From the IMG/VR virus record IMGVR_UViG_3300035183_000733, positions 186,001-250,000 of that record: a DNA stretch of 64,000 bases. The stretch is one strand, 5' to 3'. The notes below the pieces were generated by a model. That model had not been told where the DNA came from and searched no databases. It saw only the letters and a program-made list of their open reading frames with translations. Both the position numbers and the translations under genes were made by a program. Below are positions 286-35,460 of the stretch, piece by piece (position 1 is the stretch's first letter; each line of letters opens with the position of its first letter).

Positions 286-1146
286 TTAATTATACCACTT
301 TATGTTCGGTAGTTCCATTATTTCCTTGCCCATTTCTGACAGCATCTTGCCCATGGAACTGTAAGTGAGCGCACGCCAGTGTAAAGGTGTCTTGCCCGTC
401 TTAGAGTTCAGCACGATTTTCAACCGTTCGCCGGATAGATTCTTCTCACTCATTCCGAGCGCTTTGAGCATATTCGGCTTGCTACTGAACCCGACCTTTT
501 GTGGCTTGATCTTACCGTCTTGTATTGTCAGCCTATAATAATCATCGCCAAGCAGAACCATGTTGGCATCCTGTGCATCGGTATTGTCTGCTTTTTTCCT
601 ACCGTATGATAATACTCTCTGTATCGGTATCGCGTAGAGCCTGGTCGTCCCATCCGGTTGTTTCTCCCCGGTCATTAGTATCATGCTCCCGAGTCCGGCC
701 TTCGTAAAATTCTCGTTGACATTCTCGTTCATTATCTCTGCATCATCTTGATCGAACACTGCAACCATGTTACCGTCGCGTACCGTGTGACCGTCGAACT
801 TCTGTAAACGTTCTTTGATGAACAGCGCGTCGTATCCCTGTGATATTAGCTTGGCCTTCCAATTTTTGAAAAACTCGGTATCCTTGGTGTGCTCCATTCG
901 TATTGCGTCCCACTCGTCCATAGTTATAACTTTCGGATTCTCGTAAGTCAGCTTGCATTTCATGATGTTCTCTCCGAACATCTTGGCAAGCTCTGCATCA
1001 TCAGCAAACCAAATACCGAAAGCCGATGGGCCGCTCTTAGTTTTTGACATATCAAACTTGTCAAACTTACTGTCGGTACCATGATACCAAACAGAACCAT
1101 CGGTATTCTCGGACTCAAATAAGCTATAAGTTTTTATGTGCTTCAT
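286..1146 (-). CDS. ADP-ribosyltransferase-like (ART-PolyVal-type) domain protein with internal-protein-like N-terminal tag
   Basis: WYHGT..KFDKFD....G..AFGIWFAD motif; start moved to MKHIKTYSLFES at 1146 (ATGA overlap with the upstream gene). Confidence 0.6.
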   Translation of the reverse strand: MKHIKTYSLFESENTDGSVWYHGTDSKFDKFDMSKTKSGPSAFGIWFADDAELAKMFGENIMKCKLTYENPKVITMDEWDAIRMEHTKDTEFFKNWKAKLISQGYDALFIKERLQKFDGHTVRDGNMVAVFDQDDAEIMNENVNENFTKAGLGSMILMTGEKQPDGTTRLYAIPIQRVLSYGRKKADNTDAQDANMVLLGDDYYRLTIQDGKIKPQKVGFSSKPNMLKALGMSEKNLSGERLKIVLNSKTGKTPLHWRALTYSSMGKMLSEMGKEIMELPNIKWYN

Positions 1147-2237
1147 ATCTTTGGTTTTCCCACCATTAGTTTTATGTGTTCTTTTCCGCCTATATCGCGA
1201 CCGTACCATCCGTCGCCTAGCATATCTGGGTCCGTAGGATGTTTGCCATAGAACATTATATCTTTACCTGGCATCAACTTTTTTATCTCGTCCTTGTCGT
1301 TGATGACGTTGATGTGATACTTGTTTATCAATATCTGCGCGAGCTTGCCGGACACCTCACTGTAGTAACCTATCTTAGATAAATCTTTAGCCTTATGCTC
1401 AAGATACACTTTCTTCGTGTCCTTCTGTCCGTCGTGTCCGACTCCGGAGAATTTTATACCGTATTTTGTCTTCTGTCCGAACACAATTAGATCGAGGTCG
1501 GGGCTTCCATGAATATCGACTCCGCTCCAGAAGTTCCAATCCTTGTCGGCAAAGACGTCCTCTGGCTTTTTGATTTTTGCATGACCACCTATTTCTGAGT
1601 ACGCTGTCGATATTAGATCGAAGAACTCCTTAGAAAGTTCCGGGTGTTCCTTTGGATTTATCTCCACCCACTGGTTTCTCTTCGGATCGAGTATCTCGCC
1701 AGACTTCTCGTCCATCTTAACGAGCTGCAGCACGTGTTTCTGGAATTCTTCGCGAGAAATACGGTGCTCGAGATCGTCCATTATTATCTCAGTGTTCCCG
1801 CTGTAATTATCGGCGAGCCACTTCTTCGTAATATTGGGGTCTATCCATGTATCCTTCTTGCCGAGTATAACAGTCATAGTCGGGGTGGCGCTTGCTGTTC
1901 GGTCCACTTGCACATCGGTCGATTGCTTATGCAAAGCCGGGTTGAATAATATGCCTGGAACGTTCAGCTTTCTGCACAGCCAAAACGCGAGGAACCCGCC
2001 CATCGAGTTGCCTATTATCAATGATACTTCCTTACCTTTTAAAAGATTTATTATTTGGTTGAATATGGTGGATCCTTCCCTCCTATAATCCACATGTGGC
2101 ATAATCACATTGCTGAAATGCGACGCGAGCCATTCCCCCTTATCGCCTGGATTGGAATCAAGTCCGTGCAGATATAATATAACTGGGCCGTCCTTTTGTT
2201 CGGCCTCGAATAGTCTGAAGTTTATTAGGTGTCTCAT
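1143..2237 (-). CDS. Alpha/beta hydrolase (YqiA/UPF0227-like esterase) fused to an unknown C-terminal domain
   Basis: LYLHGLDS, GNSMGG nucleophile elbow, LFNPAL. Confidence 0.7.
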   Translation of the reverse strand: MRHLINFRLFEAEQKDGPVILYLHGLDSNPGDKGEWLASHFSNVIMPHVDYRREGSTIFNQIINLLKGKEVSLIIGNSMGGFLAFWLCRKLNVPGILFNPALHKQSTDVQVDRTASATPTMTVILGKKDTWIDPNITKKWLADNYSGNTEIIMDDLEHRISREEFQKHVLQLVKMDEKSGEILDPKRNQWVEINPKEHPELSKEFFDLISTAYSEIGGHAKIKKPEDVFADKDWNFWSGVDIHGSPDLDLIVFGQKTKYGIKFSGVGHDGQKDTKKVYLEHKAKDLSKIGYYSEVSGKLAQILINKYHINVINDKDEIKKLMPGKDIMFYGKHPTDPDMLGDGWYGRDIGGKEHIKLMVGKPKI

Positions 2238-15065: not shown

Positions 15066-16163
15066 TTACTCTTCGTCGGCCTTCAGGTAGATCTTGCGAG
15101 CCGAAACATCCACGAATTTCACGTAAACGTCCACGTCGTCGCCGACTTTGAGACGTCCGAGTTTCTTTAGTTCCTTGGTAGGTAACAATCCAGTCACCTT
15201 GTTCTTCATCTCAACAAAGGCCCCGAACTGCTTGATGTCCTTGATCTCTCCCGTCACAATCTCTCCCTCGTACTTGGCCTTGAACTCGGTCAGCGCCATA
15301 ATCTCAGGCGATGGACCCTTCTGACTTAGTATGATACGGTTGTTCTCGCGTATCTCCTTTATGTAGAACTTCATCTGGTCTCCCGGCTTTATGTTCCTCC
15401 AGTCGCCGTCAGTAATCTCGGATTCGTGCAGGAGCCCTGTGAACATCTCGTCCCACTCCACGAACACGCCGTAGTCCACAGTCCCAGTTGCGATCCCGGT
15501 AAATTGCGCTCCGAGGTCGAGTTCCTTTATCTTCGAAGGGATTATCTTCTGTATGTACTTCTTGTTCGACACTACGAACATGTCGGACGATTCGAGGTAG
15601 TTTTCCACCATTACCATGACCTCCCTGCCGAGCATTGACTCGAAGTTGAGGACCTTGTTGGCGGCAGCCAGGGATCCTGGCATGAAGCAGTCGAGCCCGG
15701 CGATGTCGACCATGAAGCCGCCATCGTTTATGGACTTGATGGTGCCCTTGTAAGCGGTAAACTCTGTTTTCATAGAATCGAATAGGTCTCGCTTCAGGGT
15801 TATCATGTACGCCTTCTCTATAGAGCCGTAGTAATTGCCCCTGTTGATTGTCTCGAGCAGGACATCCACTTGCAGCCCCGGCTTGAGCGTGTGCCCGGTT
15901 TTCTCGAGGAATCTGCTTTCCTTCTGGTAGTCGAGGAATATGTTCGCGGACGATTCCGTTGTAACAACGACGATCGATCCGTCGACTTTGTCTACTCTGG
16001 CCTTGCATATCTGGCCCACAACCATGTCTTTGGGGACTATGGAGCGGCCCTCGAAGTAGGCCTGGTATTTGTCGTAAAGTTCTTGCGCGTATGGTTCCTG
16101 GCAGTATACCTTGTGGCTTGGGTCCTTGGTTATTACTGACTTGTTCTCTATGAGTCTGCCCAT
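15066..16163 (-). CDS. Ribosomal protein S1-like protein (multiple S1 domains, truncated)
   Basis: GGFMVDIAGLDCFMPGS, YGVFVE...TGLLHESEI, FGAFVE...GLLP. Confidence 0.8.
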   Translation of the reverse strand: MGRLIENKSVITKDPSHKVYCQEPYAQELYDKYQAYFEGRSIVPKDMVVGQICKARVDKVDGSIVVVTTESSANIFLDYQKESRFLEKTGHTLKPGLQVDVLLETINRGNYYGSIEKAYMITLKRDLFDSMKTEFTAYKGTIKSINDGGFMVDIAGLDCFMPGSLAAANKVLNFESMLGREVMVMVENYLESSDMFVVSNKKYIQKIIPSKIKELDLGAQFTGIATGTVDYGVFVEWDEMFTGLLHESEITDGDWRNIKPGDQMKFYIKEIRENNRIILSQKGPSPEIMALTEFKAKYEGEIVTGEIKDIKQFGAFVEMKNKVTGLLPTKELKKLGRLKVGDDVDVYVKFVDVSARKIYLKADEE

Positions 16164-23500: not shown

Positions 23501-23788
23501 TCATTCACGTCGAATCTCAGCAACACCAAGATTCTTGAATTTCTCGAGATACTCAATGGCATCACGCCTACCTTGTAAGTAGTTTGTCTCGAAGGAGAAT
23601 TCCTCGTTATCTATGAACTCCTCCAACGTTACGAGGTTGCCGTAATATGATCCTATGTCAGGGCGCATATCCGTGTCCTTATGTACCTGGACGATTGTTA
23701 GCAGCGAAACATCGGTGTCGTTGCCGTGCAGGATCTTGGGACCGCCGTTCGCGGATATGTCCCCTGTGTATATGAATCTTCTAAGCAT
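23501..23788 (-). CDS. Hypothetical protein
   Basis: 95-aa ORF directly after the RNase P RNA. Confidence 0.5.
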   Translation of the reverse strand: MLRRFIYTGDISANGGPKILHGNDTDVSLLTIVQVHKDTDMRPDIGSYYGNLVTLEEFIDNEEFSFETNYLQGRRDAIEYLEKFKNLGVAEIRRE

Positions 23789-23800
23789 GTTTTAAAAATA

Positions 23801-24032
23801 AGAAGGCCTATAATCGCGTTTCTGTTCCTCTTGCGAGGCGCCGTACATTTGACTATGCCCCAACCCGACCATCATCGACCTGCTCACCGCCTAAGTCTGT
23901 TTGGGTTGCATCTCGGAAGGACTTTCACTTACGGTGGTACTATACCGGCATTGCTGCCTCCCACTCCTCCTAAGCAGAGATGACGCGAATTTCCTCAGCG
24001 TGCAACAGCCCGCCGCGTACGACCGGCCTTCT
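23801..24032 (-). ncRNA. rnpB: RNase P RNA, minimal form (about 232 nt)
   Basis: P1 AGAAGGCC/GGCCTTCT; P2 GTCGTAC/GTACGGC; P3 hairpin; GAGGAAATTCGCGT pairs with ACAGAAACGCGATTA (P4 with bulge); P5 CATCTC/GAGATG; GCAACCCAAACAG; TAGTCAAATG; P19 CCTC-GCAA-GAGG. Confidence 0.85.
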
Positions 24033-24053
24033 ATAAATATAAATATAGCCGTT

Positions 24054-24785
24054 TTATTCGACAATGTCAAACGAGATGTACGGAAGAAAGTCTCCAATCT
24101 CCGTGATCGAGTACTTTACATCCACGCTCTCGATGTCATGACTCTCGTCGATCTTGTAATCCTCGACCTCCGGAGTATCGCATTTTATGAATATGCCGTT
24201 CTCCTCCATTGACCCCTTGCGACCCACGATTACACGATTGCCAACCGGGCTGATGAAAAACTTAAGGCCGCCTGCGTTCGGGTCCGGCTGGTAGAACTTG
24301 TTCTTGGTCTCTCCATCCGGGAAGAACAGACGTTTGTATGTGGATTCGCTGACGAGCGCGAAGTTTGCCGGCCCCCTCCTGCCCATTACCGCGATCATAT
24401 TGGAGACCGCGAGTATGCGGGCGAATATCTTGCGGTGCGCGTTACCGTCGAGCTTCAGGTTTATGCCGGTAGGAAACCTGTCGTTGACGAGCTTCCCGTT
24501 TTCTGCCGAGATCTCCAATAGCCTGTCAAACGCTTTGTCGATGACGTGCTCGGCAACATCTGCCATTGGATCGCCAGCAATCTTTATGTTCTCCGATATG
24601 GTCTCTATGTCTTTGACCGCTGTGGATAGGTGGACCTCAGTAACGCCCCGCAACTCGTGATCCGGCGGTGCGGACTTGGCCGGCGCCTCGTTGAATTTCA
24701 GGTGCATTATGCTGCTCTTGTCACTGGGCACGTAATTAAACACCCCGAAGTCAAAGAACGACGACATCTTGTCTTGCGTATTCAT
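24054..24785 (-). CDS. Protein with a major-capsid (gp23)-like C-terminal segment; truncated paralog
   Basis: RKIFARILAVSNMIAVMGRRGPANFALVS resembles the T4-like MCP motif IA..T.RG.GNF; start moved to 24785. Confidence 0.5.
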   Translation of the reverse strand: MNTQDKMSSFFDFGVFNYVPSDKSSIMHLKFNEAPAKSAPPDHELRGVTEVHLSTAVKDIETISENIKIAGDPMADVAEHVIDKAFDRLLEISAENGKLVNDRFPTGINLKLDGNAHRKIFARILAVSNMIAVMGRRGPANFALVSESTYKRLFFPDGETKNKFYQPDPNAGGLKFFISPVGNRVIVGRKGSMEENGIFIKCDTPEVEDYKIDESHDIESVDVKYSITEIGDFLPYISFDIVE

Positions 24786-26263: not shown

Positions 26264-26306
26264 GTCCCTCGGACAGATCCGAAAACACGCGGCCAAATTT
26301 AGAAAG

Positions 26307-26380
26307 TGGAGCAGAAGGGACTCGAACCCTCATAAGCCTGCTTGCAAAGGCAGGTGACCAGCCAGTTGGACCACCGCCCC
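26307..26380 (-). tRNA. tRNA-Ala(TGC), 8-nt anticodon loop as sequenced
   Basis: Acceptor GGGGCGG/CTGCTCC with G3-U70; stem CCTGC/GCAGG; loop CTTTGCAA; T-arm GAGGG-TTCGAGT-CCCTT. Confidence 0.85.
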
Positions 26381-26385
26381 ATGAA

Positions 26386-26509
26386 AAACGAGAGCCTTGG
26401 AGAGGTGGAAGGAATCATCCGAACACTCGGTCCTGATGGGCAGCCAGACGGGTTTCCCGGACAATCAGATCCCTCTTTGTCCAACACTTTCCAGCGCGCG
26501 CTCTCGTTT
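26386..26509 (-). ncRNA. Unidentified structured RNA between tRNAs
   Basis: 10-bp closing stem AAACGAGAGC/GCTCTCGTTT enclosing several hairpins. Confidence 0.45.
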
Positions 26510-26511
26510 AG

Positions 26512-26585
<74 letters not shown>

Positions 26586-26633
26586 ATTTATCTGCGTCTT
26601 TCACCGCGGCGCGCTAATATAGCGTTTTTGTAG

Positions 26634-26717
26634 TACTCCCGACGGGGATCGAACCCGCTCACGGCTTGTAGCCTCCAGATTGAAAGTCTGGTGCCCTACC
26701 AAATAGGCGACAGGAGC
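26634..26717 (-). tRNA. tRNA-Glu(TTC) with a long variable arm
   Basis: CCAGA-CTTTCAA-TCTGG; V-arm AGGCTACAAGCCGTGA; T-arm GCGGG-TTCGATC-CCCGT. Confidence 0.85.
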
Positions 26718-26728
26718 ATGCCTTCTTG

Positions 26729-26807
26729 AGCACCTGGCCGGATTCGAACCGGCGGTCTTATGTACGGTTTTGCAGACCGTTGCTTTGGGCCTCTCAGCCA
26801 CAGGTGC
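26729..26807 (-). tRNA. tRNA-Cys(GCA)
   Basis: ACGGT-CTGCAAA-ACCGT; U73 discriminator; acceptor GCACCTG/CAGGTGC. Confidence 0.9.
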
Positions 26808-26830
26808 ATTTTAGTCGTTCTTGTAATATG

Positions 26831-26904
26831 TGGAGCCTATGGGACTCGAACCCGTGATCTCTTGCCTGCCAGGCAAACGCTTTAGCCATCTAAGCTAAGG
26901 CCCC
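26831..26904 (-). tRNA. tRNA-Ala(GGC)
   Basis: TTTGC-CTGGCAG-GCAAG; G3-U70; canonical D and T arms. Confidence 0.92.
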
Positions 26905-27021
26905 AAAATGGTCGCGGCACATCCAGCAAAGCAAGGACCCGGTGGCTCCACTAAGAGGATAGTCCTATGCGCGAGTTGTCTAATCTCGGCACGCCTTACC
27001 TCAGGCCCCACTTTTACACTA

Positions 27022-27036
27022 CCAATATCAAAGAAC
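27022..27036 (-). promoter_or_regulatory. boxA-like antitermination motif (GTTCTTTGATA)
   Basis: Resembles the rrn boxA consensus GYTCTTTRAMA; located just after the second tRNA of the operon. Confidence 0.35.
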
Positions 27037-27044
27037 AAACTCGG

Positions 27045-27113
27045 CGGTAGCGACGGGGATCGAACTCGCTATCCCGAGAGAGACAGTCCCGGACCTTGCC
27101 ATCAGGCGCCACC
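27045..27113 (-). tRNA. Degenerate tRNA-Asp(GTC)
   Basis: Acceptor GGTGGCG/CGCTACC, G73; loop CTGTCTC; shortened D-arm; T-stem mismatch. Confidence 0.55.
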
Positions 27114-27119
27114 AATTAA

Positions 27120-27235
27120 CACTCTCTGGCGGGATTCGGACAACAGTCATTTCCTACTGCGCCAGTATCGAGGACTCCCACCTCGGACCGTATTCCCTAC
27201 AGTGCCTTGCCTCCGTCGGCCATCGGCCTCGAGTG
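27120..27235 (-). ncRNA. Unidentified structured RNA between the two Asp tRNAs
   Basis: CACTC/GAGTG closure; hairpins CTGTA/TACGG, CGAGG/CCTCG, CTGGCG/CGCCAG with nested CAGT/ACTG. Confidence 0.35.
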
Positions 27236-27238
27236 TTG

Positions 27239-27315
27239 CGGTCTATGTCGGGATCGAACCGACCTGAATCTCCCGCGTGACAGGCGGGCGGCCACACCCT
27301 GCAGCCCCATAGACC
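27239..27315 (-). tRNA. tRNA-Asp(GTC), first gene of the operon
   Basis: CCCGC-CTGTCAC-GCGGG; G73; acceptor GGTCTAT/ATAGACC. Confidence 0.9.
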
Positions 27316-34650: not shown

Positions 34651-35460
34651 TTAGGTCGCGGTAACTTCCACGAACTTGGATACCTTGGAACGATCAACGG
34701 AAAATATAGGGATCGTCTTGCTTGAAACCCAATGACTTCTGGTCGCCCCGTCCTTTTCGTAGTACTCTCTCTCCACTATGTGACCGCGTTGCAGAACCTC
34801 TGGCAGTTCGTGCCAGAGTATACCCCTTTCCGCGAGCATCTGTTTCATGGTCTCCACGTTCTTTTTGTTGAGTTCTTTGTGCGAGAATTCGGATTGTGCC
34901 AACGCCGAAACCGAGTTTCTTATGGCGTCCTGCTGCCTCCACACGAATACGTTGTTGACTTCGTCGAAAGGGACGCTCCACGCGCGAGCGTCGAATACTG
35001 CGAGCTTGCGTTTCGGCGCGTCACCTACCACCTCGGCGGCAAGTATCCGCGGGTTCCAGTACATCTTGTCCATGTAATCGTTGAAGTGCGCAGATGCCAT
35101 CGATGCGGACACTGACACTATCTTGTCGACCTTGCCCTTGAACCAGTGCTCCGCTTCTGGGTTCTGGTGCGTGGTCATCAGCAAGGAAATCTCGTCAGAC
35201 TGCATGTACGCAATCTTAACGTTCTGTATCTCCTCGCACAATTTTATAGTGGTGTAAAGCATAGCACCGGATATGTGCTCGTCGAACGGCTTCTCGAACC
35301 CGTTGGTGTATGTATGGAAGGCCTTGCCGTCTATTCTTATTATGGCGGGATAACCTTCCGAGAGCACCTTGCCAACGTTCTTCTCGTACCACTTCATCCT
35401 GTCGCCAAGCGACAATGCCCTCACCTCATCCTCGGTATATACGTCCCTTATGTTTATCAT
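34651..35460 (-). CDS. tRNA(His) guanylyltransferase Thg1-like 3'-5' polymerase
   Basis: IRIDGKAFHTYT, YMQSDEISL, FDARA, WRQQDAIRNS. Confidence 0.9.
   Translation of the reverse strand: MINIRDVYTEDEVRALSLGDRMKWYEKNVGKVLSEGYPAIIRIDGKAFHTYTNGFEKPFDEHISGAMLYTTIKLCEEIQNVKIAYMQSDEISLLMTTHQNPEAEHWFKGKVDKIVSVSASMASAHFNDYMDKMYWNPRILAAEVVGDAPKRKLAVFDARAWSVPFDEVNNVFVWRQQDAIRNSVSALAQSEFSHKELNKKNVETMKQMLAERGILWHELPEVLQRGHIVEREYYEKDGATRSHWVSSKTIPIFSVDRSKVSKFVEVTAT

Follow-up and report, generated by a model that had tools for sequence, protein, structure and literature searches.

A putative miniaturised RNase P RNA encoded by a family of large phages

Does a large phage encode its own RNase P RNA and, if so, is that RNA a working ribozyme? 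The question is raised by a 64,000-nucleotide (nt) stretch of DNA, referred to here as the window, which spans positions 186,001 to 250,000 of the 373,759 bp IMG/VR contig UViG_3300035183_000733. From its letters alone, an initial annotation had placed a stripped-down, phage-encoded RNase P RNA in the window; we find the interval it gave to be exact to the base, with the gene on the minus strand (24032..23801). Comparative sequence evidence leads us to propose, at a probability of about three in four, that this is a genuine miniaturised RNase P RNA of a large-phage family and that it would act as a ribozyme in the maturation of tRNA 5' ends.

An Rfam cmscan search in E-value mode (positions 23700-24150) aligned the minus strand 24032..23801 with the archaeal RNase P model, RNaseP_arch (RF00373), over its full length (model 1-288) at 46.2 bits and an E-value of 4.8e-12. 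This archaeal model, and neither RNaseP_bact_a (RF00010) nor RNaseP-T, is the best match of the clan. The curated gathering scores are 84 bits for RNaseP_arch and 100 bits for RNaseP_bact_a, and because 46.2 bits lies under the former a default Rfam scan is silent on RNase P: at gathering thresholds the whole window gave no RNase P match, and five tRNAs alone were reported. Judged by these thresholds, the family lies outside every curated Rfam RNase P family, and it was previously unmodelled. The energy of the single-sequence fold of the window RNA (z = -0.38) is uninformative, because the RNA is pseudoknotted. The initial annotation described a gene-free interval hidden under spurious open reading frames (ORFs). 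The first part of this description stands only in so far as the flanking ORFs terminate at 23788 and 24054, since three mechanical ORFs overlap the interval; the second is not supported, as the three overlapping ORFs are, as listed, all absent from the public protein collection.

Evidence that the structure is under selection comes from an alignment of 61 sequences fitted to a covariance model, a procedure that itself favours the structure. In this alignment 98.5% of paired cells hold a standard pair, compared with 74.6% after shuffling, and 25 of 30 pairs show compensatory changes, with substitutions on both sides (shuffled mean 16.7). The covariation score is 0.593, against 0.164 for shuffled alignments (0 of 500 reaching the observed value) and at most 0.083 with slid partners. 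The covariation across homologs by which the initial reading could be checked is seen in the P4 helix, which is paired in 100% of the sequences, with seven of its eight pairs covarying. MAFFT-based alignments and a fixed-register script concur with the model-fitted result; with the register fixed, 64 distinct sequences show 99.4% pairing in P4, a level that 0 of 500 shuffles reach at six positions, and all eight pairs can form in nearly every relative. With RNAalifold, 17 sequences and 27 sequences alike give a long-range P4 that carries compensatory changes, together with P3, P5, two internal-domain helices, P15, and P16 with its tip. Model R1, a covariance model made from 27 relatives but not from the window copy, has its sole match in the 64-kb window at 24031..23802 (model 1-196, 108.8 bits, E 2e-27), and finds E. 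coli rnpB end to end, if weakly (23.4 bits, E 6e-4). The Rfam match, the compensatory changes among 61 relatives and the R1 match together bear out the proposed homology with RNase P RNA.

The window RNA is 232 nt long, compared with 377 nt for E. coli rnpB, and is in this sense stripped down, as had been claimed. The helices named from the sequence alone (P1, P2, P3, P5 and P19, with both halves of P4) are all present in the sequence and in the Rfam alignment, and P1, P2 and P3 enclose the core as in the universal RNase P architecture. Numbering the RNA from nt 1 at window position 24032, with all of its elements on the minus strand, P1 is formed by AGAAGGCC (nt 1-8, 24025..24032) and GGCCUUCU (nt 225-232, 23801..23808). 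It is followed by a U-rich tail, UAUUUUUAAA (23800-23791); the terminator scan is blind to long-range stems, and this tail was judged by eye. In the relatives P1 ranges from 6 to 20 bp, and its strands differ in sequence while remaining complementary. P2 pairs GUCGUAC (nt 10-16, 24017..24023) with GUACGGC (nt 187-193, 23840-23846), and its partner strands also vary among relatives yet keep their complementarity. Both helices were examined by script; the evidence for P2 is weaker than that for P4 because this helix was chosen for its best fit to a fixed 3' register. The P3 hairpin (nt 18-37, 23996..24015) is supported by the Rfam alignment and by compensatory changes in RNAalifold.

The catalytic core is laid out around P4. 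Conserved region (CR) I, GAGGAAA, is joined to the P4 5' strand AAU-U-CGCGU (nt 37-50, 23983..23996) in the Rfam and family alignments, and CR-V, AACAGAA, leads into the P4 3' strand ACGCGAUU (nt 214-221; the two together nt 207-221, 23812..23826), as placed by family pair counting. A42-U44 and C46-U50 pair with A214-U221 at all eight positions, leaving U45 bulged. P5 is formed by CAUCUC (nt 51-56, 23977..23982) and GAGAUG (nt 119-124, 23909-23914); family-wide it comprises 4 bp, of which all four covary. Comparison with E. coli rnpB places the J5/15 CAA, P15, L15, and P16 with its tip helix at nt 125-174 (23859..23908), where P15, L15 and P16 occupy nt 128-174, P15 is CCC/GGG, and L15 is an internal loop, AAACAG ... 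GGGUU, bearing the GGU motif. The tip helix of P16 covaries in the 61-sequence alignment. J15/2 (GCAUAGUCAAAUG, nt 175-187, 23846..23858, from the Rfam alignment) is a 13-nt strand that includes CR-IV, AGUCAAAUG, and carries no P18 hairpin. Between the P2 3' strand and CR-V lies a GNRA-capped P19-type hairpin, CCUC-GCAA-GAGG (nt 195-206, 23827..23838), which is an insertion relative to both the Rfam and the family models; similar hairpins are found at loci L061 and L208. CR-I (GAGGAAA..UC), CR-IV (AG....AUG) and CR-V (ACAGAA....G..UA) match the Rfam consensus and are invariant in the family alignments. The core motifs retained in the window RNA are thus GAGGAAA, the bulged U, the J5/15 GCAA, CC-AAACAG...GGGUU-GG, AGUCAAAUG and AACAGAA.

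The specificity domain of the window RNA is reduced to 62 nt (23915..23976), and measures 48-77 nt across the members of the family. It had been read as a set of leftover stems, and the stems and small hairpins in question, GGAGGA/UCCUUC and GUGG/CCAC among them, are indeed there; however, the domain follows a family-wide plan, and both of the helices that belong to this plan (P10/11-like and P12-like) covary in the relatives. The plan runs from P5 through nCUGCUnAA, a 5-bp stem, GAG, a short hairpin, CGUUnnnA, the return strand of the stem and GAG, back to P5, and the window copy obeys it as GUGG-GAG-GCAGCAAUGC-GGUAUAGUA-CCAC. In full, the order is UGCUUAG, the GGAGGA/UCCUUC helix, the P10/11-like GUGG/CCAC helix, GAG, the P12-like hairpin GCA-GCAA-UGC, GGUAUAGUA and a 12-nt bulge, CGUAAGUGAAAG. 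The outer GGAGGA/UCCUUC helix and the 12-nt bulge are private to the window copy and without comparative support, and no close relative against which its private helices could be tested was found among the relatives. This order resembles that of P10/11, J11/12, P12 and J12/11 in RNase P RNAs lacking P13 and P14, a layout which we take to be that of the archaeal and eukaryal RNAs, and the junction strands may correspond to CR-II and CR-III. The initial annotation had also reported that elements of P12-P14 size are not apparent; this is correct for P13/P14, and also for P8/P9 and P18, but a short P12-like hairpin with conserved junctions is present.

A sigma-70-type promoter precedes the gene on the same strand (24042..24070), with TTGACA (24070-24065) and TATATT (24047-24042) separated by a 17-nt spacer and matching the consensus at 11 of 12 positions. 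An A at 24034 lies 8 nt past the -10 hexamer and 2 nt ahead of P1, and the predicted promoter is placed for a transcription start at about 24034. A wastewater metatranscriptome contains a single 151-nt unitig that covers 23884-24034 with zero mismatches while the flanking genes are uncovered, which is suggestive of a discrete transcript. In a second RNA-type library the pieces extend into the upstream ORF, and these may be DNA.

Comparison with known RNase P RNAs shows which parts have been kept. Like the bacterial type A RNA (RF00010; E. coli M1/rnpB), the phage RNA has P1-P5, with the bulged U in P4, and keeps CR-I, CR-IV, CR-V, the J5/15 GCAA and the GGU of L15. The layout of L15 corresponds to that of E. 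coli rnpB (GGCC-AAAUAG-G...C-GGGUA-GGCU) in the form CCC-AAACAG-A...C-GGGUU-GGG, and the GGU motif itself lies in GGUC-GGGUU-GGG in the window and ACCC-GGGUA-GGCU in E. coli. In contrast to type A, the phage RNA is about 145 nt shorter, is encoded by a phage, scores far under the type A gathering threshold of 100, and has no elements of P8/P9 or P13/P14 size; neither a full type A specificity domain (P7-P14), nor P18, nor the P6/P17 pseudoknot was found in the window RNA. Hairpins, one or two per RNA and often GNRA-capped, occupy the P18 position in about half of the relatives but are missing from the window copy and from the shortest members (about 180-205 nt). Although the archaeal RNA is the best Rfam match of the window copy, that alignment skips about 117 model positions, which comprise most of the archaeal specificity domain; the promoter in the window is of bacterial type, and no archaeal RNase P protein families occur among the small ORFs of the window. 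The type T RNA of the Thermoproteaceae, including Pyrobaculum (about 200 nt; RF02357), is a naturally occurring RNase P RNA of drastically reduced length, in which the catalytic domain is retained and no specificity domain can be recognised. The phage RNAs differ from it in retaining a covarying P10/11-P12 module together with a bacterial-type L15 loop; their specificity domain is not essentially absent, and since this module is kept the family is not type T.

Motif scans of metagenomes and of IMG/VR contigs of up to 465 kb yielded more than 60 distinct relatives, 177-315 nt in length. The first, at locus L052 on a viral contig, was found through a joint CR-I/CR-IV/CR-V pattern, and its RNA scores best on RNaseP_bact_a, with 50.1 bits (E 8e-14; gathering score 100). 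The motif CCAAAnAG..GGTCGGGTnGGnGC, common to the window RNA and L052, occurs in 23 IMG/VR stretches, 22 of which are RNase P-like, on contigs of 14-465 kb. A longer pattern retrieved 65 metagenome stretches, of which 64 passed the motif filter and 62 of these 64 show eight of eight or near-maximal P4 pairing; the other two (L221 and L258) are the endonuclease-split genes described below, where the script had chosen a false CR-V. Fifty stretches contain the exact 15-mer GAGGAAATTCGCGTC, and nearly all were taken as chance matches. One of them, L048:7734-7915 (+), on the 119 kb contig IMGVR_UViG_3300031772_000004, is a genuine divergent member that scores 127 bits with model R1. It has the exact CR-I/P4 15-mer of the window; its L15 region reads UCU-AAAUUAG...UGGUU-AGA, without the GGTCGGGT motif, and the family therefore extends wider than the search patterns reach. 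Two loci retrieved with the pattern GTCGGGT..AGTCAAATG..ACAGAA (L053 and L054) lack RNase P features and were rejected as chance matches. The window copy resembles the other members in the P15/16 core alone and is unlike all of them elsewhere. A blastn search of 50,697 GenBank phage records brought up tRNAs and, for the RNA itself, a single chance match, with no detectable copy, and the upstream 303-aa ORF, used as a protein query, matched its source contig alone; near-identical DNA is contained in microbial-mat, wastewater and soil sequencing runs. Across 185,579 species genomes, the first motif gave no family member among the 120 matches listed; these are chance matches in GC-rich genomes without CR-I, CR-V or P4 nearby, and the family model gives them at most 20 bits, confined to the segment forced by the pattern.

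The relatives also connect the RNA to phage tRNAs, beyond what the initial annotation could have seen. tRNA genes are present at 42 of 67 distinct relative loci and lie within 10 nt of the RNA gene at 22 of the 67; the nearest tRNA is on the same strand as the RNA gene in 42 of 42 loci, and 461 of 462 tRNAs share its strand. Arrays of this kind are exemplified by L072, L070, L069, L058 and L075, and most of the tRNAs beside the relatives are ordinary. In the L072 array (L072:1-14363), 43 tRNA genes are packed into 14 kb, almost all of them on a single strand, and the RNase P RNA gene is flanked by tRNA-Gly and tRNA-Ile; by eye, an ORF resembling histidyl-tRNA synthetase recurs near the RNA in this lineage.

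The GGU motif of the bacterial L15 pairs with the 3'-CCA of tRNA, while the specificity domain of bacterial enzymes reads the T and D loops. The parts conserved in the phage family are those for catalysis and substrate docking, beyond what mere protein binding involves, and it is because of this, and because the genes accompany tRNA arrays, that we favour an active 5'-maturation ribozyme. We propose that during infection the RNA would fold into an RNase P core, bind precursor tRNAs from the large phage tRNA arrays, and remove their 5' leaders by metal-dependent hydrolysis at P4, most likely in a holoenzyme that pairs it with host RnpA or else with a phage protein. Where the gene abuts tRNAs, the ribozyme itself would also be freed from the array transcript, as RNase P cleaves the tRNA downstream of it and the 3' end of the tRNA upstream of it is processed.

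At least six distinct relatives are circularly permuted. Permuted genes are found at L074:3740-4036 (-; identical in L256), L222, L215, L228 and L249, and those of L207/L237 and L201 are probably permuted too. In the permuted order the 5' end lies in the P3 3' strand, a short loop replaces P1 after the P4 3' strand, and the 3' end consists of the P2 5' strand, GC and then the P3 5' strand. In L074, all 16 pairs of P3 and all seven pairs of P2 can form across the ends, and the 5' end directly follows a tRNA that ends in CCA. Two-piece (circularly permuted) transfer-messenger RNA (tmRNA) genes and engineered circularly permuted RNase P RNAs represent the same type of rearrangement; to our knowledge, natural permutation of an RNase P RNA has not been described before. 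Unlike these relatives, the window copy has the unpermuted order.

In further members of the family, the RNA gene is broken up by one of two independent GIY-YIG homing-endonuclease genes. In L062:2853-3452 (-) and L073:1525-2124 (-), a 199-aa SegE-like GIY-YIG ORF (Pfam E 4.9e-6) lies in an insertion of about 610 nt that directly follows the P4 5' strand and replaces the P5 5' strand; the intact orthologue of this gene is L072:1544-1829 (-). The insertion leaves no room for a group I intron core, and the gene is therefore either two-piece or dead; if it is split, the break would fall where the catalytic domain meets the specificity domain. In L221:1745-2338 (-), and at the matching place in L258, an unrelated, LEM-3-like ORF with GIY-YIG and NUMOD3 domains (E 6.8e-11) occupies an insertion of about 640 nt between the P2 3' strand and CR-V, at the position of P19, beyond which CR-V, the P4 3' strand (8 of 8 pairs) and P1 continue. 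A more far-reaching version of our proposal is that the phages run a tRNA-maturation module of their own, in which an active mini-RNase P does not depend on the host RNase P RNA, may also dispense with RnpA or rely on a novel phage protein, and comes from a gene that tolerates permutation and endonuclease splitting; we consider the chances of this version to be evenly balanced.

Several observations weigh against an active ribozyme or against the breadth of the supporting evidence. The Rfam score of the window RNA is far under all curated RNase P thresholds, including that of its own best match (46 against 84 bits), and the evidence for a transcript consists of a single unitig of read length, from a library possibly containing DNA. 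The relatives were retrieved with motifs from the window RNA, so that conservation of the P15/16 core, which served as the search pattern, is partly imposed; the negative for cellular genomes rests on the 120 matches listed. The specificity domain is drastically cut, and drastic cuts to this domain in engineered bacterial RNase P RNAs weaken tRNA binding. A gene for a protein cofactor was not found: neither an RnpA-type (Ribonuclease_P) nor an archaeal RNase P protein is present among 37 small ORFs of the window (64 of 374 kb, 17%), and neither an ORF with the RNRxKR motif nor a family-wide conserved neighbour occurs within 4 kb of the 67 relative loci. None of the six tRNAs encoded in the window carries CCA. 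Finally, the RNase P-like RNA of orthopoxviruses was reported to be inactive in pre-tRNA processing in vitro (PMC3001073).

This last precedent, for which a decoy role has been discussed (PMC3001073), raises the alternative that the phage RNA is a non-catalytic decoy or regulator, whose RNase P fold would sequester host RnpA or precursor tRNAs and so shut down or redirect tRNA maturation in the host. The reduced specificity domain, and the failure to see a phage cofactor gene among the small ORFs of the window or in the neighbourhoods of the relatives, are in keeping with such a role. However, a decoy for protein has no need of the bulged U of P4, the J5/15 GCAA, the GGU of L15 or a covarying P10/11-P12 module, all of which are kept in more than 60 divergent sequences, and same-strand placement within phage tRNA arrays fits the processing of transcripts. 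We consider a decoy unlikely.

The tRNA genes of the window itself bear on the substrates of the proposed ribozyme. Six phage tRNA genes form an array (26306..27315, -; ARAGORN and Rfam, with the 3' ends read) that lies 2,273 nt (2.3 kb) upstream of the RNA gene on the same strand. Because these tRNAs lack CCA, the GGU loop has no encoded partner on the primary transcripts, and it could act solely after CCA addition, or on other substrates. The array includes a tRNA called with a 4-base anticodon, UUGC (26306-26380, -; Rfam tRNA 42.9 bits), and a tRNA-Glu(UUC) with a 13-nt variable arm (26633-26717, -). Between tRNA-Asp and tRNA-Ala, a tRNA-like element that neither ARAGORN nor Rfam calls was recognised by eye (27113-27045, -); it has a 7-bp acceptor stem, GGUGGCG/CGCUACC, a canonical T arm, GAGUUCGAUCCCC, and an irregular anticodon arm, and is surrounded by about 330 nt of GC-rich non-coding sequence. 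A small ORF of the window encodes SmpB (E 6.5e-49), and no tmRNA was detected in the window, including near the tRNA array.

It is conceivable that the RNA is an active ribozyme that acts chiefly on targets other than ordinary precursor tRNAs, such as non-canonical tRNA-like elements, tmRNA precursors or phage mRNAs, with the trimmed specificity domain shifting its choice. The 4-base-anticodon call, the long variable arm of tRNA-Glu, the uncalled tRNA-like element and the encoded SmpB point in this direction, and the specificity domain is the most changed part of the RNA. Set against this, the tRNAs that neighbour the relatives are mostly ordinary, no tmRNA was detected near the element, and the junction strands of P10/11-P12 are conserved, as expected if recognition of the T loop has been kept; we regard this account as slightly less probable than the decoy.

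That the gene does not belong to a phage at all, and that the contig instead derives from a small-genome cellular symbiont, from misassembly, or from a very recent capture of a host rnpB with no role in the phage, is highly improbable: bins of huge phages can be confused with small cellular genomes, the window encodes SmpB, an S1-domain protein and Thg1, and the species-genome scan covers the 120 matches listed, but no member is among those matches, 22 of the 23 IMG/VR stretches with the core motif carry a member on contigs of 14-465 kb, and a recent capture is an unlikely source of a family so highly diverged and with its own conserved architecture. The claim that the RNA is phage-encoded is upheld by the contig itself, which is held in IMG/VR and whose window ORFs include baseplate wedge and baseplate proteins, a Dda-type helicase, ribonucleotide reductase, homing endonucleases and many glycosyltransferases.

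Returning to the proposed 5'-maturation ribozyme, the window also encodes a Thg1-family tRNA-His guanylyltransferase (34651..35460, -; PF04446 E 1.4e-30, phrog_4717 E 2.5e-88), whose proximity would fit a tRNA 5'-end pathway run by the phage. The S1-domain protein is encoded at 15066-16163 (-). Elsewhere in the window, the ART-PolyVal ADP-ribosyltransferase domain is recognised in two ORFs (best E 1.9e-19), one of them at 286-1209 (-), and a small ORF resembles 2'-5' RNA ligase and Acb1 (E 3e-6 to 8e-6).

RNase P is one of two universal ribozymes, and the known translation functions of huge phages comprise tRNAs, synthetases, ribosomal proteins and tmRNA/SmpB. We found no report of a phage- or virus-encoded RNase P RNA in the open-access literature, including surveys of huge and jumbo phages and a 2024 review of RNase P, although an earlier report elsewhere is possible. 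The only viral precedent found is the RNase P-like RNA of orthopoxviruses (camelpox), which resembles bacterial and archaeal RNase P RNA (PMC3001073). That RNA belongs to a eukaryotic virus and has no tRNA-array context, whereas the phage family is large, diverse and structurally selected.

A phage-borne RNase P family would add tRNA 5'-processing to the translation functions of huge phages. Current annotation pipelines miss these RNAs because their scores fall under every Rfam threshold, an annotation gap that model R1 or an equivalent would repair. The family indicates how far a bacterial-type ribozyme may be trimmed with its core kept, which would be useful for structure-function studies and for small engineered RNase P tools, and those of its genes that are permuted or split by endonucleases provide natural experiments on the two-domain folding model. 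If the more far-reaching version of our proposal is correct, no active RNase P encoded by a virus would precede this one, and the permuted or two-piece RNase P RNAs would likewise be the first to occur in nature.

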